Below are positions 1-37,717 of a stretch of DNA of 64,000 bases, piece after piece. The DNA is from Bugula neritina. Taxonomy: Eukaryota > Animalia > Bryozoa. The first letter of the stretch is position 1, and each line of letters begins with the position of its first letter. The DNA lies in assembly GCA_964035545.1 (NCBI GenBank), contig OZ037765.1, positions 16,802,995 through 16,866,994 of the forward strand, given 5' to 3'. The position numbers were made by a program, and so were the translations under genes. The notes beneath the pieces were generated by a model. That model had not been told where the DNA came from, searched no databases, and was given only the letters and a program-made list of their open reading frames with translations.

Positions 1-3000
1 TTTCTGGATATGAGTAATTTCTTATCTGCTACACAACAACCAAGCAAAAAGAAACCAATTATGATGAAAACTGAATAGACACACCATGCTAGAATATTAA
101 CCAAAGAATATTCTTTGAAAATCACTCAATTGAAGTTATTCTCTGCCATTGTGAGTGAGCACATAAATATAAATTTAGCCAGATTAACACAACATCTAAA
201 ATAGTAGGTGGTTAATGAAAACTCGATGAATATGGAAACAAAAAGTTTAGCTCCTAAAGTGCCCACAAGTCAACATAATGCAAATAGGAGATAGGCATAA
301 GCCAGCAATTCACCTTGAATTGTCTCAGATCCCATATTTTAATCAGACCATCATCTCCGCCACTAACTATAAATGGTTCATTAGCATTCCAACTAATAAC
401 GTTAATGTCTCTATTATGAGCTTCCTCGCACGTAAGCATACATGCTTTTGATGGGGTTGCCCTTGTGTCCCATATTCTTATACTTTTGTCCACAGAACAA
501 GATGCAAACACCTAGCAACATATAAATAGCCGTACACTCACAGATAAAGTCCAAAACATATTTTTCGTTATTACCTACAATATAGGCTGACTAATTACAA
601 TCTAAAGTTTACATTTATAAAATTGTATATAATCTCAGATGAAGGCAAGTGTACTTACAGTTGGTTCATTTGGTGACCACTGAATGTCCTCCACAGACGC
701 TGTGTGGCCTGTATAAGGTCGCTGATCAACACTCCAACTAGACGAGTCTTGTGGCTTCCACAGGTGTATATTCTTATTACAATCACCAGTCAGTAGCTGA
801 CCTATAATGAGACAACTTCCCTAATAATCACAGCGAGCAACAGAAAGAAAAGGGGGGGGGGGGTCTGAAAGTAAAAGATAAAAAAATTATTTTTAACATT
901 ATCTTTGACTACAGGTAAAATTTAAAATCATGGTGTGCAAGTTTAGGGTATAAAGTGGTTGCTTGAAGAGTTAAGGATGAACAATGAATAACATTTACCT
1001 GAAACTAACGGGCACCAGTCCATAGCAAAACCCTCCACTCCATGCCCGCTGAATGAAAATAATGGCTGTATGCTTTGTGTTTTACTAGTTTTATGATATT
1101 CAGCTAGAGCTTTGGGATCATTCACAACATCCAATGGTGTTGACAAGTCCCACACATACACGACTCCTCGTTCACACCAACTCGCTGCAACCGTCTTTCC
1201 ACCAATTTGACAAGCCTACCACATGCACATTTGAGACCATCAATATCAACAAGTTTAGGGTTGACACTAGTAAATCTCTTAACTCAAATAAAAAAGGGCT
1301 AGATACCTAAAGAACTACCAATACACACTTGTGCCCACACCTATACAAAAATAGCACAAACTCTGGGCGAGATCATCATGGTGTAATGAGTATGAGAACT
1401 GGGAAGTAATAAATTCCGCTTAGCATGAACATAGCACTGCTCTCAGAAGTCAAATAAATAAATATTTAATTCGCAACTTTAATACTTACAACTTTTTATT
1501 TATTAAATACTGCAATATTGAAAAACTGAAACTATAACATATCTCCACTACGTAACCCTGCAATATTGCATGTATAGAGAAACGTTGCAGATTTTATATA
1601 AAAACTGCACTACCTGTATATGAAAGCTTGTGATACTTCCAATAATGTAATCAAAACTTTGATTGGAGAGCATAACATACACCAAGTTAACTCAATCATG
1701 ATTGGATGGTACTAATAATGTGAAGGGAAATTTGGCTAGCATTATTATTCATTAGTTGCCATAATTTATGTTAAAATTTTTCTACATGTGGGTTATTGGA
1801 GAAGATTAATACAAGGCACCCTACCCTAATTCTGTTTACTGCTCCTAGAGGATGCTTAATTGGTGCAGCAGACAAGACTGGTAATTGAGAGTTGTCTTCT
1901 TCATTGTCACTTTCATCATCACTTCCTCCACTCTCCTCATTTGACTTCTCCTTGAACCTACGAACATGTAAAAATACAACTTATAGAAATCAAATTAAAT
2001 TGTGTCAGCTATTATGAGCAGCTATGATGGTAGTAACTGCAAATATAGCAGACAATTATTTAACCTGCTACATTTATAGAATGCAGATAAAATAAAAAGG
2101 GAACAAGCATATTCAACAATATAGACAATATAGATAACTTTATCGCTTTAGTTATATTTTGTGTCATATTTGACCAACATTAATATATGCAAGACCTACT
2201 GTGTGTCACTCAACACAGAAATTAATTTAATTTTGCAGGTAAAAATTTAGGTTGTCCCACATCACAATTGTTCACTCTACTCCCTAATACAACTGCAATC
2301 AAACCTGTGCATGTTGGATAACTTCATGACTATAACACTGTTAGTGTGACTTCGCTCAGCCTGAGTACCACAAACAAGATAGCTGGTCATAGGATACGAC
2401 TCTCTGCCTACCCCTAGTGGGTCTTCCAACACATCAAAGCTTAAGCAAGGAGCACCTTTAATAAAAGGACAAAACACAGTTTTTATCACAGGCTATCAAA
2501 CAACTCCAAATAACTAACTCATAGATTTTCTAGGGGGGAATAGGAAGAAAAATATAATGAAAAATTAATATAGTCTGAGTGAAACTTGCATATTGACTAA
2601 AATTATATTTTTTGGAACAAATCATTAACAAAAGATATGTACCGAATCATGCCCTACTTTGATTCAATTACATTGTATTAATTACCAACACAGAATACTT
2701 CTTTCTCAGAGTGTACGTACTATACTACCTGTGTGTGCTTTGTGTAACATTATATAGGCAGACTCATCTACGACCAGTTTGCTAGGTCGACAATCATCTT
2801 CCTCATCAACTTTTGATCCTGGCAAATAGACCCTAGAAGATCCGCTATCACCGATCATGCCCTAAAATTTGCATGCCCAATCTTGAAGTTCACGTGACAA
2901 CTACTATATGCTCATAAAAGCTAGCAAGAAAATAGCCCTAATAAAGTATTTTCCTACCTCTTCTTCTTGATTGCTAATGTCTTGGACTATTTCATCACTG

Positions 3001-12300: not shown

Positions 12301-13384
12301 CACATTTTAAACCACGTGATAGAGGGTAAGATAAATCTTAATAAACTTGAACCCTAATGAATATTAAATAGTTTCATGTTATTTACCAATACCAGTTGTA
12401 GGATGTTACACCAAATATTAGTTGCAATATTGTCCAATTGTTGCCAATGTATGGAGCTGTAGCAATGAACACTTGAGTGTAAAAGTGCTCCTGCAGATTT
12501 TATGAACAAAGTATCCCCCATTCTTTTGCCAGAAAGCTCAACAACCAGGAACTTATCTCCACTTGATATAAGCTTACAAACTGTAAAATGCATCTGTCTT
12601 CCTTTTGCTTCCTTATGTTGTCCTTATGTTTTTTCACAACCACTACAGTTGGAAATTAGAACGTGCAAATATGTCTCCCAAGATACAGTTAATGTTTTGT
12701 GTTCTGTAAAATTAATTATCTGATTGGGTTATGCATATCCAGCTGGAAACCAATTCTAAGTTAGCAAGGACATGCAATTCCATGTTGTGTTGTATCCATA
12801 ACTTGTAACTGAGCACAGCTGCTTTCATTGATGAGAATTTTTCGAATTGTTGAAAATGCATCAAGTTCGGACCAAAATTGGATTTAAGTTTCTAGAAAAA
12901 GTCTTGAGGAAGCATTTAGGATGGTAACAGTTGTTAACCATGTTGTTGTTCTGATTGAAGCAAACCCAAGCTGTTGGGATGAGGAAATCATTTTGTAATT
13001 TGATGATGATGTTGTGGGGCATTAGACCATGACCAGGCTGTAAATATAGATAGAGCTGAAGATTAATCACACCATAGTCATGTTATTTGGTATACTACTA
13101 TTCATTTTCCTCTGGTTATGATGACTCTACCATACTGAGTGTTAAGATGATAAGCTCTAGCAGCCTGTCACATTCTATGGATAATGATCGACTTGAGAGC
13201 AACGACTTGTACTAGTAGTTTATCACAGGGTTGTAATTGCACCAACACCGCTTCTGTGAATACTCTTAACACCATGAATATGGATCATGACTGGTATTAC
13301 AAATGGTTATTATTCTCTCACCTTCAGACTAGAGACTGGCAGCATCAACTTCTTTCGAACTCTGTGAGATCTGCATCAAACGAG

Positions 13385-16300
13385 ATGACATTAGTTACTG
13401 CTGTCGAGTATACCTGCTGCCTCTGCAAACGTGGTGGTCAGACAGTCAAACATTCACCTAGCACCGTCACCAGACTGTTAGGAGTTCTAAATCTCAGTAC
13501 ACTTCCGTCTGCGTTATCAAAGTCAGAGCTAGACGAAAGAATAGGTCTGTGTGATAGTTGTGAGAAGCAGCTGAAGAAGGTGGAGGAAGCAGATACCGTG
13601 AGAGAGAAATTAAAGGAATCACTCAAGAATAATCTTGAGCATCTTTCAACACCTGTTACTGGTAAATTTTAATAAGATTTTATAAACTGTTGAAAAGCGT
13701 AAATTAAAAGAAATGGTTTTATATGTTTTAGAAGTTAAATATTCGTAAAACAGTGCTCAAACAGTTTGTAAAATCAGTCATATTTGTGTTGCTCTAAAGC
13801 AGCTGTCATCCAAATTTCCACTGGCTGGTGCTGTGTGTATTGGCCAACACCTTGTCTATGTGCTCTGCTGTCACCTGTTGTAGCTGACCAGCTTCCTAAC
13901 ACTACATTAATAATTGAACTTGTAAGAACTAAATTATTCCAAATTATACAGTGAGTGCAATCCTAATTACTATCTTTAGTTGCAGTACATTTAGCTAGCA
14001 ATGGGGTTATTATGTTACTAGTCAACCAAAGCTAGTCATTATGCAGCCTTAATATTTGCTGTCATTTGAATCGGCCTTTGACAGCTAAACGTAATTTATC
14101 AGTTCAATTCAATTCAATGGCCTAGCATTGTTGTTATACTCATGGCTGTTTATAAGCTGTGCTTTGTGCTGAGCTCATCAATTGAAAAAGGATTTTGAAC
14201 TGTCACATTGACCTATATAGCAATAGCACGGTTTTCCATCATAATTATTATGCTGCTTGTGTCGTAAACAACTAAGGCACGTTATTTGCGCCATCTTTAG
14301 CCAAGTGGAAATCATGGAATACTGGGATTTTGATTCCTTCTTTTCAGATAAGTACTCTTCGGATATGAGTTTACCTCTGCTAGGTGGCACCCCTGTGCCG
14401 GGCAGCTTTCCTTTCCAGCATACTATGCACAAAGCTAATGAAATCACTCCTAGTCTTCAACATTCCATGAAACGTAAAATCTCTAACATAGCCAACTTGT
14501 CGACTGACACCAGTGGTTCCTGTAAAAAGTTGCGTAAGGCTCAACTGGAAGAATCATATGAAGCAAGAGATGGTCACACTTACGCTGATTCCTCAGATGA
14601 GGAAAATGCTTTGAAGGTAAGGTTTTATTTGAAATATGTGAATATATACCATTACTGTGAATATATACCATTACTGTGAGTTTATATATTGGCTGCCATT
14701 AGCATGGGGGAGAAGGTGCTTGCAGGTCAAAGCAGCAGTCATTGGTTTAAACTGCCAGTCAATCATTAGAACCTTATGCTAAACTACAACATATCTTTTC
14801 AAATATATATACGATATATGTTTATGTGTCATGGTTTTGAAAATGGGAAACTGGTTTTGTATATGATGTCTAATGGTAAATAATTTAACCACCGTTGCAA
14901 AGTTTCTAACGTCTACATTGCATGCTCAATTTAATTTTATGTCGACTGGTTTTGCCTTAAATTCAATGGAGGTATAGAGATTTCAGAATTTGCCTAATTG
15001 TAGTTTTTTTAAACTCTGCACTTTCAATCAAATCGTTTAATCAGGAGATATAAGTCAAATATAGGTAATAGACGCACCTTTTAGTATATTTTGATTAAAT
15101 TGGGATGGTATATCTACCAAAAATAAGGGCGAATTGATCTTTTGAATTTATTTCTGTCTGCTTATTGAATTGTTTAACTTTTTTGTCACTAAAACTATAC
15201 TTTTTCATATAATACTTGTCATTTTGTATATAGAAATAGTTCTCTGCCTGTTTTTGGTTCATAAAACTACCACATATGTATACTTTTTTATTAGCTCCAG
15301 TTTCTAATTTTTATGCAACTCCTTTTTATTAAGGTGAAGATGTCTTGAAATAGTTTTTGTTCCTAAAAGAATGAATATTTTCAAAATCTATTGCCTAATC
15401 TTGTTTGACATTCCCATTAGTAATTAACTGTGTGTTTGTAAATTCTTCTAGATCAGTGGAACGTCCCCACACAGCAGTCTAAGTGACTACACTCCACCAC
15501 CATCCATCTCTCCTCGACCCAACTCAGGTCACATCACACTTGCCCCCACAGAGTCTGTACAACAGGTAGGTTATGAGCAGCTCTTTCTTGAATTATGCAT
15601 TTGCTACAGATTTACTTACATCTTATCTGAATGGTTTCCAGCATGAGTATATTGTTTGAGTGGAATCAGTGCTGTGCTCTGTTGACTGCAGCAATTGTTA
15701 GTGGGCTGCTTCTCAACATTCTGGTACGTGTGAGAGGCTGACACTTATGATTCTTATTGAGAGTGTGGTAAGACTGGTGTTGGTGCCAAAGCTCAGCTGG
15801 GTGTCTCTATTGGAGCAGCTGGATTACGGTGCACTGGTATGAGTTGCAGTGTTGTAGTTGGTAGCCACTGATTGGCTGGGCATGGTAACTGTTGACCTGA
15901 TGAGTTGGCACTAGCTGATAAATTTGTTTGGCAGCTGAGTGATGGCCTGGCAGTGACAGTGAGAGCCTAGCAGCTACTCTAGTAGTGTGTAGTTTGCCTT
16001 CCATCTGTTATTCTGCTGGCAATTTGTTGATCACAGTTTGGTCACACATGATTGATGTCATTGCATCAATAAGTGCGAAAATAGATTAAAAGGAAGATGA
16101 GGCAGTATGACCAACATTGTTGACATATTTTGATGGTGAATTTCTGATTGCCATTACATTATTTTTGATGAGGAAACATTGAGGTTTAGCTTGTTAGAAT
16201 TATAATTAACTATTTTATAGCAGGGTTGGAGCTTGATCACCTACTTGCAGGGTCTTCATAAATCTTCAACTTTAAGGTGCATGTCATGAAGACCTAGTTC

Positions 16301-19300
16301 TACTTTGGGAGGATAACTCTTTATTATTGTAACTAGGGGTTTTAACCTTGTACTTGTATTTAGGTACTGACAGAATTGCCTTGTGGAAGAAACAGGCGTA
16401 AGCAGGCAAGGCCAGTTAAGGCTGAGGTGTTGCCAAACCAGAAGTTCTTCGCTCAATGTTCACCGCCCATGTCAATGCGGACTCCCTCCCCTGCAGTGCC
16501 CTCAGAGAGAGACAGCCCGTCAGCTGGTAATCCTAGTCGGGGCTCTACACCGAAGCTGCTGGCCTCTGTCTCTCCTCTCTCACTAGCATGTCAACTACCC
16601 CAGCCTCCCACACCCCTTCCTTCTGTGTCATCAGCCTGTGCAGCTGTGACCAGTTCAGCTGCTGCATTATCTGGCAAAGTTACACCATCTTGTGATAGTG
16701 TGAGTTCACTGAGTGCTACTCCTATCTCTAATACTCTTCCACTAGCCAGCTCCCTGCCCTTGTCATATCCCTCATTCTACTCCAACAGCATACAAAACAA
16801 CCTCATTCTCCTCCACTCTCAGCCCTCCATGCAAACACCTGCCGCTGCCTCAGCCATGTTGTTTGCCCAAACACTTCTCAATTCTGTCTCCAAAACACCA
16901 GCTATGCTGCCCATCAACGGCAGCAGTATGTTCAGACAGAATAACCAAGCTGCAACTAGCCGGTCACTGCCCTTCACCAAATCAAATTCTGAATCAAAAG
17001 CTGAGCAGTCTGTTTCCAAATCTCTGTTACCGGCAAAGAAAGAGCCTAAAGTTTCACCAATTAACTATTCAACACATTCTGTGAGTATCCATACGACATA
17101 GTTTATGTGGTAATTTATGCTTGTTTAATTTTCTGAAATGTCTTTGTCCACCAGGAACAGGGTTTGTAGACAGCATTTATACACGTGTACTAGCTTAGAT
17201 ATTTACAGGAGTAAAAATTTTTACTAGTGCTGCTATTTCACAACTGGCCATACTAACTAGAAGTCATTTGTGAACAAAAAGCCACTGACAAGATTAATCC
17301 TTTAGTTTCAACTCAGAGTACCTCTTTGTTGTTTTATTGAAGTTTAGATTAAGGCACTCATCTATTATAACTCCCCCCCCCCCACCCTCTACTAAATGAA
17401 AGCAGACTATTTGATTGCTAGCATTTAGTACACTCTGGCCATTTTAACTGTTTCTTATAGTTTCTTCTGTACAATTATAGAATTCTGCAATGGCTCTCTC
17501 CTCCCACAACTCTGGGCTGCTAGCTAAGACCATAGAGACGCACACTCTGGTGAAGACAGATAAAAGGAGGTATTGTAAGGTCTGCGCAGCTTCCAGCCGT
17601 AAAGCCAACAATGGCCGGCCTCCACAGTCTAGGTAATGACACTGCATGCACTGGTTGTACATGGCTGTGTTTAGTGTGAAGTGGCTTATAAATTAACAAG
17701 ACCTTGCACTACTATTTACCCCAAATAAAATATGCATTCAATCTCTTCTCTACTTGAATTACCTTACACTAGAGTTTTACTTACTTTGATGGAAAAATAG
17801 CCCCATTTGTTTGTGAGCTGATAACTCCACACAAAGTTTTTGTCTATTCAACTTGCTTTTAGATATTATGCTGGTTATGCAAGTGTAGTTTTTCTTACTA
17901 TTTGTACATGTTGGCAAGAATGAAGCCCTGCTTTTACTTACCTACTTTTTTGCTTTTACTTTGTTTTATATAATGCTTCTGCATTAGATATGAGTGAGGT
18001 ATTTATTGTTTGTGCAGGTTTTTGTGTCTGGTGTGTGACTTGCCCATGTGTAGAAGTTGTATAGAAGAACACAGGTTCATGGTTATGTAAGTATATCTGC
18101 TTTTCCTTCCTTTAACCCCAACTACATTACTATAGCATCAAATAATTATAGCCATGTTGTTAATATATACCAACTGTTGGCATCACAACTTGGGACATGT
18201 TGAAGTGAGAAATATTTTAGTCATTTTAAAAGTCAAAGAATACAAGACATTCTAGAACTTCTATCAGGGATATTTTAACTCTGAAAATAGGTCAAAATTT
18301 AACAACAGTTTCTCTAATGAATATTTGCTAGAACTGTATTTTTAAAACAACTTGGTTGAAGCTTCAAATATGTTTACAGCATTATTAATTGCCCGCCGCT
18401 AACTACCAACGTTACACACATTTTCTCACCTTTTAAATATATAAAAACTAACCGTTTGCTGTGAAACACATAGTAGATTTTTACTATCCTAGCTGCTAAA
18501 CTAAGTTCCAGTTTACAATGTATTGCAGCAAGTTTAATAATTCTACATTACTCCTGGTGTGTGTCTTCCAGGTAAATTCAATGTTGTCCAATCTCTATTG
18601 TATTGTATGCAGATGTTTTTATTTCTCCTTATCATTATATTTGTGTGTGAATGTATATAACTTGTCCAAATTTAATCTGTAGTTTTAAGGCTATTTATTA
18701 TTTTGGGAGTTGATTTTGAGTACCAATGAATATTTTTGTTCAAAGTTATGTTGTAAATGCTGAGCATTAATTTGATTTTTGAGCTACTTTTTAACTAGAC
18801 TTCTATGATTAGTATCGTCAGTAGAAAGTATTGTTCAGGCTTTAAGAATGTTCTTTGTTGTATGTGATTTCACTTGCTACAGCTGACAGTGCTATGGTCA
18901 GAGCCAATGCATTACATTGATAACTACATTGTTCTATTTTCAGTTTTCTACACTTACACCTCATAGTGACTACTATCATGTGTAAGTGTTGAAACTAAAA
19001 GTAGACATGTCTTACCACATAGCACTTTATCTGTTACACCACCATTTGTGAACCTAAAAGACCTATTGGTTCTGAGAGGTTTTACCAGTGACCTAGTGCT
19101 TGAGTGATATAAATTTCCTTCCTGAATACATAGTGCAGATCTTGTCTGAATTTATCTCTCTATCTTAAATATCAAACTTTTACATCTGTGATGAGAACAT
19201 CAGCCTAAACCTTACCACTCTGTTTATGACTTTAGGCCAAAATTCCAATTTATAGTTTGATGGCATGTACTTTTTGCATAACTTTGCAGTATCAAGAGCT

Positions 19301-21854
19301 GTTTGATGTATTTTTCTCTCCTATATAATATAATATATGATTGTCTGGTTTCTATGTTGTACTGAACCCAGTCAACTAAACAACTAACTGCTTTTGATTT
19401 GTACAAATTTTGGTAAATTCTGAAATCATGCCTGAAATACAGGGAACAGATGTTGGAGAGAGCAATGAGCTATGACTAAAAGTAGTAGTTACACAGCATT
19501 GTTGAGGAGGAAATCGTAGCTCATGTAGGCTATTTTAGTGATTAACCACCCTGACATTAAACTTTTGAAATCTCTTAGCCTATTGGTAGGTGTGTTGAAA
19601 GCCAAGTAACTGAACTGTGTAATAAATGCTCACGGGCTCATGTTAATAAACTAGCAACTTCTTGAAACTCTATTCATAGGTCTATTAAAACAATTTTTTT
19701 TACAAAATTTGAGGAAGTTTCCCCAACCTGCCTCTAAGTCCTACCATTGTTGAGACTACTATTAACCACACACCTCCTTCTCTCTTATTCCTGTCTATTG
19801 ATTCTGCAGTTTAATCAAGTCATCATCACCTCTTCATGAACTCTTCATATGAATCATGATTGATTTTCCAAAACAGGAAGTCAAATAGTTGTCATCAACT
19901 TACAATTATTGCAATAATTATTCAGTTACTTTCTTGTACCATTTATCACATAGTTTTGTAATGCATGGGTTCACTGCCAGCATTAATAGTAATTTTTGTG
20001 TGAGAGTAGCTGTCTGGACATAACTCGGGTAGTTTTATGATGGGCCAGCTCTGGGTTTTGTCCCACTAAGTTAAACAGCTACTCTGGCATATCTACAGCC
20101 TTCCCCCCCCCCCAACAGGGGTGACCTGAGGGTAGTAAAATAGATAGTTGGCAAAGTTTCAGTTCTAAAGAAATTTAATCTAGATTATGTAATACCTATT
20201 TCAACTATATTTTTAAAAGAAATATATAGAAACTCAATTACAAGTTCTGATTTTAGCTGACTAGCTGCTGTAGGTTCCTGTAAGATATCTGCCAGGTCTA
20301 ACTAAGCTCTCCTAACTGCTGCCATCCGTGTATTCTTCAACTCGATAATTATGCATGGCTAGAATTCTACCAGCTCATTTTATCTGCTAAATATCTTTCA
20401 GGTTGGAATCGGATGAGAATAAGTCAGATGTCAAACCATCAGCATCAGCTAAACTCTTGCAGGCTGTTAAAATGAAAGATAAAGCCAGGAGTTCAACAAC
20501 TAACAAAACTACCAGCTCCAATAAAACAAGCAGCAGTAATCTATCAGCTCCCCCTTCCAACAGCTCATTGATATACGGATCAGCAGCTAGGGCAACCCCT
20601 CCACCTCTTCCCGCTACTCTCCCAGCTTTTCATCAGTCGTCACTCCCTGGCAGCAAAGAGTATGCTGATTCGTTAAACCTACCTCAACCTTCACCTCCGA
20701 GTGTCTCTAGCAACCAGCATCTGTCTGGTAACATGCGTCTCTCCAGCTACAAACCCATAGCTCCGGCTCCACCAAGACCTCCCAGCTCCACTGGTCACAC
20801 CAGCAACTTAGAAAGTAAAGAAAAACACAATGAATGCAGGAGCACAGATGATGTTACATCAGATGAGGTTCATTCAACTAATGGTATTGAAACCAATAGA
20901 GTGCCTACACCTAGCTATGCCTTTCACAAAAATGTTGATCAAACCAACATTACACCAGAAGTAAGTTGGCCTGCTTATAAACTGCAGGCATTTCTCAAAA
21001 TACATTTGTATGCTGGCACTTGAAAAGATAGGCTAGTGTGGTCTTGCTATGCTCAGTTGATGCAAATACAAATTCTAATAGCTTGATTGTATTTCAAACT
21101 GAAGTGAGCTCAACATTCTAAATTGATGAAATGTTTATGAACCCCCTCCCCCTCAACATTATTAGTAGTTGCCGTTTTTAGCAGCTAACTACATTTTATG
21201 AGAATGCCCAGATAAAGTAACAGCAATGTACTGGCTGATTCAGCACTAATACTCTTTCAAGTAAATCAACTTTAATTGAATTTTTGTCTGTTTGTTAATC
21301 TTAATTAATTAGAATATGACAATTGTTGGTAGCCATAGGCGATTGCAACACTCTGCTATTTGCGGCACCCTAATGGTAATACATTTGGAATGCTGTTATT
21401 ATATTATATTATCTGGCTGATGACCTGTGCACCCACTGGTGCTACTAGCTTTTTTGCATGGCTTGTTTACCATGAAGTGGTTGAGTGGTACCACTGCCAG
21501 ACTGGTACTAGTACTGCTTCTACTAATGCTTGATGTAATTTTACTACAGCTGCTACTGTCACCACGCTAACTACTACTATTAGTAATAAATGTATAGTTT
21601 TATTATGGAATTGTGAAGATGTGTGTATGCATTGCATTTAATTTTACTAGATTGCTAGCAAAACAGTGGCAATGCTTCTATCAGTGGAAGAAGATATTTC
21701 TACACCTTCACAGCAAAAGACAAACCAGCAACAGTCAACCTGTTCTTCCAAGTCAGACATTCCATTTACCAGTCGCTCCAATGGCTCTGATAGAATTCCA
21801 TATGACATTCCATATGCTATTGCTTCTCACTCGGAATCAGCAGAAGCCATTTGA
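13385..21854 (+). CDS. Uncharacterised ~786-aa putative transcription factor: ZAD-like N-terminal C4 domain, RRKQxxP motif, Ser/Pro-rich regions, piggyBac-transposase-like C-terminal Cys-rich finger
   Basis: Eight GT-AG exons join in phase without stops: 13385-13661, 14348-14616, 15452-15565, 16364-17080, 17481-17632, 18018-18086, 20402-20960, 21651-21854 (2361 nt incl. stop). The acceptor at 13327 lies upstream of the ATG and the frame is open there, so an N-terminal extension is possible. Confidence 0.8.
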
Positions 21855-23986
21855 TTTTTATACAAACATTTCATTACACTGCAATATTCTTACCTTTTAT
21901 TAAAATCTCTAGATGAACTGCAATTAACGTTTACAGAATTATGTTGCGGTGCTCATTTTCATTTGTATATAGAAAGATATATGGCTAGTGCAATTTTGAT
22001 TCTTTACATGCTCAATCTCTAGCAATTACATTTAATTTTTTCATATTATCAAGTTATTCCATTATTTCAAATTAGACACACTGCTCAAGGGCAGGAAATT
22101 GCTCCACACAGCATGATGACTATAATAGCCAGTGGCTATAAGGATGTGATGGTACTTATTGATGTAGTGCCGCGACATCAACTAAGTTTAGCTTACTATT
22201 ATTAGTATTATATCTCTTCTTTGATAAGGTTTCAGTGGTGCATAGAGAGTGATATTAACCAATTAATCCTAAAGCATTAAATTGTGAGAATATATAAAAT
22301 GTGCAATATCATATGCAATAAATATCCTTTTTAAAGATGCAATATTTCTTACATAAATGTATTTTAGTACATATTACAATACATTTGTAGTTTTACTGCT
22401 TATATCATTCCATGTTAATACTTTCAGATTATAATAAAGTATAAAACTAAAACAATGCTTGGATTGCTTATGTTTGTGCAGCAAGAATCAACACCAGCTG
22501 ACTCTCCTCTTTATCCTCCCTGCCTCAATATTTTCTTTTTTTATAGTATGTTAGTATTACCCCAGACCTTCATGCTCAGAAATATATCTTGTTCAACTTC
22601 ATTTTGCAAATAATAATCAAGCTGTCTTTTGCATGTGTTCATCCAAGGAAGTGTACAACTAGCATGTGGGGGGAGGGGGTTAAATGGTTTCTTGCCATTT
22701 AGGAGAAGTAGTGAATTAAGATAGCCCAAGTTCTTTAATTGTTCTATTAAGTTTTGTTTTGGGGTGCAGGTTGAAGTTCTTGTGAGAACATAGTTTCTTG
22801 TGTTATATTTCTAATTTAGAACATAGGCTTTTCTAACTCTCTCCATTACTTCACTTACCTCCGTTCTCGGACCTTATATGACTATAGCGATATTATATTG
22901 GTAATAATTCTACAATCTTGTTGTAACCAATAATGAATTGAAGATGTAAATGTTTGACTTAGGATCAAGTCTAATTGAGGGAAGGAGTCCCAGCATAATG
23001 CTTCAAGAAATAATATTCCCAGCAGGGCTTTTAAGTAAGTTCTTACTGGTTGTTTGAACAGTAAATACATGGACAGATATAAAATCAAATGATCTTAAAT
23101 GAAGCTAGGGGTATTGGAAAGTTATAACAGCCTCTCTATGTTGTTAAATCTTAATTTGTGACCTGGTTGGTAACTTTGAGAAAATAACCTTCTTGATCAA
23201 CAAAGATTTTTTAGCAGAGCATAAAATTTTGATAGAAAGCTGTGTAACGTAAATAGTTTAAGGGCCCAGAAATTTTCAGATATTGAACTAAAAGGTCTCA
23301 AATTATACTAATTACACAAATTATCGTAATTGTAAGAAGTTAATAGTAAGTATAGTTTTCAGATTAAGAAAATTTTTATGCCATCTTGGAAAGTTTCTAT
23401 ATATTTGTACAATTAAAATAATGTACTTTTTATTTTACTTAGCACAATACCACTACTAATTTTGAAACTAGTAAAGTCTTGTTCTTATAGAAGTTGGTTC
23501 AATCAAAATACCATCAGCCAATTGTGATCACCACTCTTTTCTCTTCCATATGCTAATTTCCTATAAGACAACTTATGTTTTACAGTATAGAAGGAAATAA
23601 AATGCAGCGTGACTCAAAAGCATTATATGCATTGTATATTTTGATAAATATAAGAACATGCTTCCAAATATATATAATAATAAAATAGGAACAAAGTAAA
23701 ACATATTATTGTCTTAATTCAGGAGCTTTGCTTTATCAATATGTATATGCCTTGTCTAAATTGGTATCAGCCGCAGTATGTAAATCCTTTAGTAAAGCTG
23801 ATACAGCCTATAACTTGTTTGTTTGTTTGTTTGGTTTATTTCATCAAAGGTATTTAATAACACAAGGACATTAGAAAATGCCAAGGAGGCGATGATGAGG
23901 CCCATTGCGCTATAGCCTAGCTAGTCATGCGCGGGCCAACACGAGCTGACAGCGACTCTATCCAGAAAAATACAAAAAAAATACAA

Positions 23987-27330: not shown

Positions 27331-29867
27331 GTCAGCATCTGACTACCATTTCATTTACATAAACATATCTATGCATTTATGAGAGTTTTCCTTTTTAGTG
27401 TAATATAATTAAATAATTACTCCTGCAAAAAATATGGTTGAATTCAACCTCAATTTGTAATAGAAGCCATTTCCACAAAGTTTTAATAGCACTTGTCCTT
27501 TTACATTATCAGATTGAAGATGGTATTTTTTCAGTAATTAAACTGCTTTTAGAAGATACACAGCAAAATATAATTTTAGTTTTCTGGCTGGAATGTAAAT
27601 TGGATTTGGCTAATAAAATTATATAAAAAGAAAATATAGTTTGCTCTTTTTGATCGACTTAAAAGAACTTGGTGAAATATTTTTCAATGTTCTGAATCAA
27701 CACTAAAATAAGTAAATACAGCAACTATAACTGTCAAAGTGCAAGCTTTTAAATATATGAATTTGGCATGTTTCTTTTTTTTCAATTTTAGAGACTACAT
27801 AAACTTGTAATGTTAGTGCCTCTTTTTTAAATTAAGAATACAGCATAAGTTTAAGTTGGCACTTATCAATTGGCATCAATAATATAACAGTGGCTTTTTG
27901 CAACTACCAATACCCAATGCTTATATTCTAATCACTCATGTTGTGTGCTATATATCAACTTTTATGAGATAAAACAGATTAAAGATATAGTTCCTATTAC
28001 AATACATTGTCTTTAAAGAAGTAATATATAAAATGTATTTAAATGTGACTTTGCTTTCACTATTTCAAGTTGCAAAACTAATTTTGCTATAAGCATAAAG
28101 TAAAAACAAAAATTAGTCCTAACCATTGTTTAGTATATGCTCTTCCACTTGTGTTAGAAAACATCAAACCCATTTCTCAGCTAATTTTTCCTATATATTC
28201 TATCCACCTCGATTATTTCATACTGACTATGCTATGTGCATTGGCCACCGTGTGTTTTTAAGTAATAGGCCAATTTCTTATTACTAACATACAAGTATCT
28301 GCACTCTGCAGAATATCTGCCAGGTTAAATCTGAAGGTCATGTGGTAATACAGCAAAACTCTAGCCCAACCTGTAGAAATAGAAAACTGATTAAGCCACT
28401 ATAAGGCACGAACAAAGAAAAGACGTGATTATCTCCAACTTTTGGGTGTTGTTCTACTACATTTAAGACTAGTAGCTGCCTTAAATGTACCAATTATGTT
28501 AATTAATGGTGAATGCATTGGAAAGGAAACTAAAACCCACCACCTCCTACAGGCGAAAAATGGCTACATGTTTTCAGTTCAGCAGTAAATTATTTCTGGT
28601 TATTTAAAACGCTATTTAGGTTAGCTATTGCAAGGTGAATAAATGCTACAAAATCTGTTTCAACAGACAATTAAATAATCATAGGCGGAGATGCATGTAG
28701 AGAATGTAAAGATACTAATCCTACTTGAAGCTAATCATTCATCTTCTATTTGTTATACCAAGGAGTTGATTTTACCATATTTTATATTGACAGCCTCCTG
28801 TATATAGCCTCCTGTGAGCCTCAGCTACAATATATGGCCGTCATACGTAGATGGTCAGCTAGCTGGTATAACGCTAGACATATTGGTTAAACCCAACTTA
28901 GCAAACTAAGCTTTCCAGATTCAAAAAAAGTTTTGGGAATTCCTCCAACAACTTGTGAATTTTATAACAAAATAAATATATGATTTAAATCACAAAATTG
29001 AATTAGCTCTTTTTAAAATCATAGGCTTACCTATCAAATGGCAGACACATCAGTTGTAAGGAAACTTTTGCTGCTGGTGAAGTTTTCCATACTAATTATG
29101 TTTCTAAAACTTTATTTCTGTAGTATGTAATGTCTGTATTGAAAAGTTCCTATTTTATTTTCTTGAAGCTAGTCAGGGTGCTTATTATGCTTACGGATTT
29201 ACATTAATAAATTCACAACCAGTTTCACCCTTATTAAAAAAATTATTGGTTGTAACTTCTCACGGCAAGATACACCTTTGCCAACCACTGGCAAGTTTGC
29301 CATCAGAGTAATGACTATATGGAACAATATTATGCTGCCATCAAAAAGTTGAGGCTAAAATATTTTATTTCTGTTTAAAAATGGGTTTGGAAATAACAGC
29401 CAATTGAGTTGAAACTTGCAACAAGAGAATTATAATGTCTAGAATATAATTATAGAGAATATCAACTTCACAACTTGGGATCTAATTTTAAATTAAATAT
29501 GGTTATATTTCAGGTATGCAATAAAATATTGAGAGAAAAGTAAAACGGTATGATGGCATGGTATAATTGTTATATAGATATTTCTATTATCTTATCGCAG
29601 TTCAGAAAAGTTGTTGAGCTCAACAAGTTAGTGTTTATTACCATTGTTAGAGTATATCAATAAAATAAGTATAACAGCAAAAGCTGAAACACTATTAGTG
29701 CTGTTCATAAAATGCTATTAGAGCCATACTCTTCTAGACCAGCACCGGTTGCATTAACAGCAACTCCAATATCTTGTAACTATTTGGAAGACACGGAATT
29801 TCAAGGCAAATTCTTTCAATAAATTACAATAGTGTTCAAAATTTCTCAGCTAATCATATACAATGTG

Positions 29868-37717
<7,850 letters not shown>

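Follow-up and report, generated by a model that had tools for sequence, protein, structure and literature searches.

ZADs are known as dimerisation modules that serve arrays of C2H2 zinc fingers, almost only in arthropods. Here we analyse a stretch of 64,000 nucleotides from the bryozoan Bugula neritina (GenBank assembly GCA_964035545.1, contig OZ037765.1, positions 16,802,995 to 16,866,994 of the forward strand), which is called the window below and whose first letter is position 1 of all coordinates given without a contig or locus name. It contains a gene whose predicted product combines an N-terminal module of ZAD-like fold, an internal motif of the type bound by the RBBP4 subunit of the NuRD complex, and a single Cys/His finger that resembles a finger of piggyBac-derived proteins. 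The published NuRD (RBBP4) motifs are an N-terminal RRKQxxP and an internal RKxxxPxK, the latter defined on ZNF512B and PHF6 (PMC11602157). A variant ligand order of the piggyBac cysteine-rich domain (CRD), in which an upstream His is followed by CxxC, CxxC, C, and CxxxH, has been described for PiggyMac, ciliate PGBDs, some piggyBac-like transposases, and human PGBD2-4 (PMC8086355). In the protein sets searched, no named or annotated full-length protein with the architecture of the Bugula gene was found, in agreement with an earlier note on this DNA, written from the sequence alone, which had not recognised it as any named gene. A word search with exon 1 likewise gave no match, with only proteins of 51-161 amino acids (aa) being in range. 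The gene represents a new combination of known modules in an architecture that is seemingly restricted to Bryozoa.

A conserved eight-exon gene

The earlier note had proposed one spliced open reading frame (ORF) of eight exons and 786 aa, starting at ATG 13385. This ORF could be rebuilt on the plus strand with eight GT-AG exons, compatible phases, and a polypyrimidine tract at every acceptor (borders checked by script, with the exons left unjoined); it comprises 787 codons including the stop. The exon structure was retained, whereas two coordinates had to be changed: exon 4 ends at 17632 rather than 17634, and the start at 13385 was replaced by one further upstream. ATG 13184 opens the ORF 201 nt ahead of ATG 13385, has in-frame stops just upstream, and adds 67 residues (MID.., followed by the stretch MDxDWYYRWLLFSH). 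As this upstream part is conserved in relatives, 13184 is the likelier start, and the product probably has 853 aa. The relatives of exon 1 were obtained by a HMMER search of 1.84 billion representatives, and the nine judged to be true, which are short ORF-level calls from genomic contigs, begin with MID or MIE. MDxDWYYRWLLFSH is near-invariant in them, stands ahead of the ZAD-fold module, and lies in a predicted helix (residues 34-48, predicted local distance difference test [pLDDT] score of about 57-61); it gave no family match. The resulting gene model comprises the following features.

13184-13661, plus strand: coding part of exon 1, ending in phase 1 at a GT donor; alternative ATG at 13385
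13280-13321, plus strand: conserved motif MDxDWYYRWLLFSH, residues 33-46 counted from ATG 13184, taken from the alignment of relatives
13397-13648, plus strand: zinc module of predicted ZAD fold with Cys 78, 81, 123, and 126 and a long C-terminal helix
14348-14616, plus strand: exon 2 with KANE(I/V)TP..HS(I/M)KRK(I/L)S, a second basic cluster resembling part of a bipartite nuclear localisation signal (NLS), and acidic SDEEN
15452-15565, plus strand: exon 2b, 38 codons, phase 0/0, with SPHSS..YTPPP; the eighth exon in the count of the earlier note
16364-17080, plus strand: exon 3 with the NuRD-type motif, followed by about 220 S/P-rich residues
16394-16420, plus strand: motif RRKQARPVK at the start of exon 3, fitting RRKQxxP and RKxxxPxK
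17481-17632, plus strand: exon 4, from 17541 on encoding the first finger half (His, 10 residues, CxxC, basic loop); ends in phase 2
18018-18086, plus strand: exon 5 with the second finger half, CxxC-x4-C-x2-C-x3-H, the last ligand ending at 18072
20402-20960, plus strand: exon 6 with the islands SASAKLLQAVKMK, PPSNSSLIYGS, and MR(L/I)P.YK.IAP within low-complexity sequence
21651-21854, plus strand: last coding exon (IASKTVAML..), stop TGA at 21852-21854; ATTAAA at 21899

Further loci were taken from marine metagenome or Logan contigs bearing relatives and from metagenome contigs that were scanned for the pattern of the exon 4 alignment. They represent at least six further species (species-level loci L005, L011/L017, L012, L016, L018, and L021/L023). 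In every contig long enough to show their order, the exons are collinear on one strand, and both finger halves were matched in every locus. The small exon 2b appeared as a conserved tblastx block with AG/GT borders in L005, L011, and L012, and the intron within the finger occupies the identical phase-2 position in L005 and L012, as read from the DNA. Further conserved islands were seen: exon 2 has KANE(I/V)TP..HS.KRK.S and SDEEN, exon 2b has SPHSS..YTPPP, and exon 6 has SASAKLLQAVKMK, PPSNSSLIYGS, and MR.P.YK.IAP. Because at least six other species share these eight exons in an unchanged order, the comparison of these sequences indicates that this is a real conserved gene and that the eight-exon model is far beyond chance.

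Every search took the exons one at a time. In the B. neritina genome, exon 1 and exon 4 each have a single copy. Pfam gave nothing above threshold and no C2H2 finger on the seven exon pieces scanned (exon 2 once, E<=1), and Rfam gave no RNA family in 12500-22500.

Modules of the predicted protein

Exon 1 carries the pattern C-x2-C-x41-C-x2-C followed by a long helix, as the earlier note had described, and the four Cys residues are invariant in 9-10 orthologues. A first AlphaFold2 model covered the 159 aa of exon 1 and drew on nine sequences. It reached a pLDDT of 75-86 across the zinc module and was compared with 48,161 PDB cluster representatives. Only six matches with Z>=5 were obtained, and all six are ZAD structures: CG2712 (6fp5; Z 7.7, root mean square deviation 2.6 over 74 residues), M1BP, Serendipity-d, Grauzone, rabbit ZNF276, and Pita. 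The next best match had a Z of 4.2. With a second AlphaFold2 model covering the 92-residue module (pLDDT 81), ZADs occupied ranks 1, 3, 4, and 7 of the top seven rows in Foldseek, and the structural neighbours of the module in the ESM Atlas were arthropod ZAD-C2H2 and THAP-ZAD proteins with TM-scores of 0.60-0.69. The module is accordingly described here as having a ZAD fold in its predicted structure, and by analogy with ZADs it would form a homodimer.

The bipartite basic stretch KRK...KKLRK was located in exon 2, and RNRRKQARPVK, followed by S/P-rich sequence, at the start of exon 3. The form RRKQARP[AVS]K is present in all seven species, with the rest of exon 3 being about 27-33% identical. 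This constrained motif satisfies both the RRKQxxP and the internal RK(x)xxPxK/R form, which agrees with the earlier description of it as NuRD-type, and RBBP4-type genes (CAF1C_H4-bd) are present in the B. neritina genome. The motif sequence suggests that RRKQARPxK may dock on the RBBP4 subunit of NuRD. A separate observation concerns exon 2, where most orthologues have RRKQLK[TS]H at the place at which Bugula has KKLRK; this sequence makes up the latter half of the NLS-like bipartite stretch (for example L012 4974-5180, L021 3037-3231, and L018 187-390).

The protein has a single Cys/His finger, which is split over exons 4 and 5, and no C2H2 array, as had been noted before; the Pfam scans agree with this. 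Its ligands follow the order H-x10-CxxC-x18-CxxC-x4-C-x2-C-x3-H, and all eight are invariant in seven species. The finger exons show 64-91% aa identity across species. A comparison of nonsynonymous and synonymous differences, which the earlier note had proposed as a check, gave a pN of 0.10-0.18 and a pS of 0.75-1.0 when the counts of exon 4 and exon 5 were summed. Since synonymous sites are saturated and pN is low, no other part of the protein is as constrained as the finger, and these counts indicate that the finger is under strong purifying selection. It has a net charge of about +6 by residue count, contains an invariant RKANNGRPPQSR loop, and is followed by about 250 more residues to the end of the protein.

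The ligand order of the finger is that of the PiggyMac/PGBD variant of the piggyBac CRD (Pfam PF13842, zf-Tnp_2 region). In BLASTP, exon 4 matched the C-terminal end of an intact piggyBac-like ORF of the B. neritina genome with an E value of 0.006. With hhalign, both finger halves were collinear with A2, an alignment of eight PGBD C-termini most of which come from bryozoan-like sources (Watersipora subatra among them), with P values of 2.7e-4 for the first half and 0.011 for the second. Against a hidden Markov model of bryozoan PGBD C-termini the first half scored 13.2 bits, a value reached by 3 of 1000 shuffles in which Cys and His were fixed. The stretch of the first half that resembles PGBDs beyond the ligands is DKRRxCxVCA.

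Proposed role and competing explanations

The reading that we favour, to which we assign slightly less than an even chance as a whole, is that of a single-copy nuclear regulator of about 853 aa that would be dimeric, would recruit NuRD, and would use a piggyBac-type finger as its anchor. According to this proposal, the ZAD-fold module would make the protein a homodimer, the KRK-type basic clusters would direct it to the nucleus, the internal RRKQARPxK would dock on RBBP4 of NuRD, and the basic finger would anchor the dimer on DNA or chromatin, which would make the protein a repressor or architectural factor that works as a dimer at targeted sites. Most likely, on this view, the finger would stem from the C-terminal CRD of a PiggyMac/PGBD-type transposase captured before these species diverged; an intron would have split it later or already at capture, and the transposase core would have been lost. 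A more specific version, which we put forward tentatively and consider rather unlikely, holds that before the sampled bryozoan lineages split only the piggyBac finger of roughly 50 residues was exapted, that it was fused with a divergent ZAD and an internal NuRD motif, and that it has remained near unchanged since. If true, the result would be a dimeric repressor specific to the phylum, with a transposase finger in place of the C2H2 array; it would also be the first factor combining a ZAD with a transposase finger, and a minimal host-transposase fusion.

Several points weigh against the favoured reading, some of which are given here and the others together with the alternative explanations that they touch. 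The evidence for the gene model is purely comparative, and every step of the mechanism is inferred from sequence and predicted structure. The Foldseek E values for the ZAD rows are weak (0.6-2.4). Pfam zf-AD (PF07776) was unmatched in exon 1 and in all nine orthologues, and none was found in the whole genome at E<=1. Among further searches, the exon 1 profile gave no significant match when run against the PDB by sequence, and a feature search of the ESM Atlas gave weak leads only for exon 1, with zf-AD at rank 9, and nothing useful for exon 4. The C2H2 array typical of ZAD proteins did not appear on the seven exon pieces scanned by Pfam. Identity among ZADs is known to fall below 18% (PMC7913770). 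Hence the earlier description of the module as ZAD-like stands for its predicted fold, for which ZAD structures ranked at the top of two structure libraries, but not for a sequence match to the family.

The first alternative is that the finger is not derived from a transposase but evolved independently, or is a B-box-like cross-brace finger for protein-protein contacts; the gene would therefore not be a host-transposase fusion. We regard this as a serious alternative, although a somewhat less probable one. It draws on the second finger half, whose score against PGBD C-termini was reached by 466 of 1000 ligand-fixed shuffles and which has nothing piggyBac-specific, while exon 5 gave a weak Pfam B-box match (PF00643, zf-B_box; 19.6 bits, cut-off 24.1). 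Pfam zf-Tnp_2 was unmatched on exon 4 or exon 5, scanned as separate pieces. A tblastn search with ten PGBD proteins revealed no DDE remnant in the window and passed over the finger itself, and no DDE_Tnp_1_7 core precedes the finger in the window. Against this alternative, however, stand the conserved upstream His and the closing CxxxH, which follow the PiggyMac/PGBD variant ligand order, the 18-residue first loop, which resembles the PGBD loops in A2, and DKRRxCxVCA, which matches PGBD profiles with a p of about 0.003. The B-box, moreover, is incomplete, its score being below threshold and no His or Cys following the last His in any species. Descent of the finger from piggyBac is plausible rather than proven on these sequence comparisons, at about even odds. 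The earlier proposal of a piggyBac-like finger was borne out for the ligand order and the first half but not for the second, which is weakly B-box-like instead. As the similarity is confined to the first half, the second half scores with the B-box, and a DDE remnant is absent, the host-transposase fusion proposed in the earlier note is plausible but not shown.

A second alternative, which appears rather improbable to us, is that RRKQARPxK is merely part of an NLS or basic patch, that it does not recruit NuRD, and that the protein does not act as a repressor. Motifs of the class RRKQxxP have been defined at extreme N-termini; the motif is internal here, at about residue 288 of 853, and adjoins other basic residues; its binding is predicted from sequence, and most orthologues have a second RRKQ, which lacks the proline, in exon 2. 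On the other hand, an NLS would tolerate exchanges between K and R, yet all nine positions of the motif, including the Q, the P, and the trailing K relevant to RBBP4 contact, are kept in seven species at saturated divergence.

According to a third and unlikely alternative, the finger reads histone tails or chromatin marks instead of a DNA sequence, and the protein is a chromatin adaptor. The ligand order of the finger is that of the PiggyMac-type CRD, and the PiggyMac CRD bound no DNA in vitro but weakly bound the N-terminus of histone H3, while the CRD of Tpb2 binds methylated H3 (PMC8086355). The PiggyMac CRD is acidic, however (pI 5.48; PMC8086355), in contrast to the strongly basic finger with its invariant RKANNGRPPQSR loop, which brings it closer to the class of the DNA-binding T. 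ni CRD (PMC5861402). DNA binding is the more likely role of the finger, with histone-tail binding as its rival. A last alternative, that the exons belong to two or more transcripts and that no chimeric protein is made, would fit the lack of an annotated full-length protein in the searched protein libraries but is very improbable, given that the phases of the eight exons fit and their splice sites follow the consensus, that no in-frame start/stop structure would allow independent genes, and that the exon order, like the intron position inside the finger, recurs in at least six other species.

Surroundings of the gene and comparison with known systems

The window consists of AT-rich animal DNA and contains spliced genes. 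The gene is flanked by a GRWD1-like WD40 gene (250-2800, minus strand) and a Src-type tyrosine kinase gene (about 29800-35500, minus strand). L012 keeps the arrangement of the window, with GRWD1 upstream and the Src-type kinase downstream of the gene; the order and strand of both neighbours are the same, and they show 78-92% aa identity per exon. Microsynteny is therefore conserved, which answers the call of the earlier note for orthologues and synteny with GRWD1: exons are collinear in at least six other species, and the GRWD1 order is kept in L012. Because of this synteny the contigs carrying the relatives are taken to be of bryozoan origin, and the gene seems to be restricted to Bryozoa.

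Two piggyBac-like ORFs were detected in the 216 Mb genome. One of them (C4:13240274-13241914; L002/L014) is a single-copy, uninterrupted piggyBac-like ORF of 547-595 aa with DDE_Tnp_1_7 at 2.9e-64 and zf-Tnp_2 at a weak 20.6 bits. Its relatives are 39-44% identical and include proteins of Watersipora subatra that are annotated as PGBD4-like; a word search limited to its C-terminus recovered only its own near-identical cluster (97% identity). This ORF may itself be a domesticated PGBD. The second locus (C1:22849880) contains stops. The suggestion of the earlier note that the protein may target piggyBac ends found no support, as only these two piggyBac-like ORFs were detected in 216 Mb.

The intron ahead of exon 3 contains one further conserved feature.

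16024-16061, no strand assigned: conserved non-coding element, about 38 nt long and some 300 nt upstream of exon 3, with the core TTTGGTCAC..TGATTGATGTCAT

The element occurs at the same intron position in L005 (3200-3224), L017 (2844-2879), and L021 (4150-4186), contains stops, and has no conserved ATG. It is among the very few intronic stretches kept where synonymous sites are saturated. Because its TGATTGAT core looks like a Pbx/Hox-type site, the element may serve as an enhancer within the intron or play a part in splicing. An alternative first exon placing RRKQ near the N-terminus was rejected for 16024-16061 because of the unconserved ATG and the stops.

The gene is apparently unannotated as a full-length protein in the searched sets, and the corrected eight-exon model with its earlier start is therefore useful for annotation. 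If a deeply conserved lophotrochozoan gene with a ZAD fold carries a finger other than C2H2 that may come from a transposase, the module would be older and more versatile than the insect expansion suggests. The gene would also be a compact host-transposase fusion outside vertebrates and ciliates in which only a small zinc finger survives, and through the invariant RRKQARPxK a link to NuRD can be tested directly in a phylum for which functional data on chromatin are almost lacking.

With ZAD-C2H2 proteins such as Grauzone, CG2712, M1BP, and Pita of Drosophila and ZNF276 of vertebrates, the predicted Bugula protein shares the N-terminal C-x2-C...C-x2-C module with its long C-terminal helix, and the predicted fold of exon 1 superposes on solved ZADs. 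It differs from them by a conserved 67-residue extension before the module, by the missing match to Pfam zf-AD, and by a single mid-protein finger of cross-brace type in place of the C2H2 array. Most described ZADs come from insects, with a few crustaceans and a single vertebrate gene besides (PMC7913770), whereas the present gene occurs in Bryozoa. The motif conforms to the consensus of the NuRD motifs of FOG-1, SALL, BCL11A, and ZNF827 (N-terminal RRKQxxP) and of ZNF512B and PHF6 (internal); unlike in the former, the complete N-terminal-type sequence is internal here.

The finger shares its ligand order with the variant CRD of PiggyMac and PGBD2-4, and its first half is similar to bryozoan PGBD C-termini. 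In contrast to that CRD, it is not C-terminal to a transposase core, is basic instead of acidic, and has a second half without family-specific similarity. The closest parallel for the overall design is a host-transposase fusion such as mammalian PGBD1, which combines SCAN and KRAB with a piggyBac-derived body (PMC9538788): in both cases a dimerisation and repression module of the kind usual in zinc-finger factors would be joined to piggyBac-derived sequence under purifying selection, an ancestry that is moderately supported for the Bugula gene. PGBD1 keeps most of the transposase body, whereas here only an intron-split finger of roughly 50 residues would survive, without a DDE core. The partner module is predicted to have a ZAD fold, and repression would run via the NuRD motif and not via KRAB.

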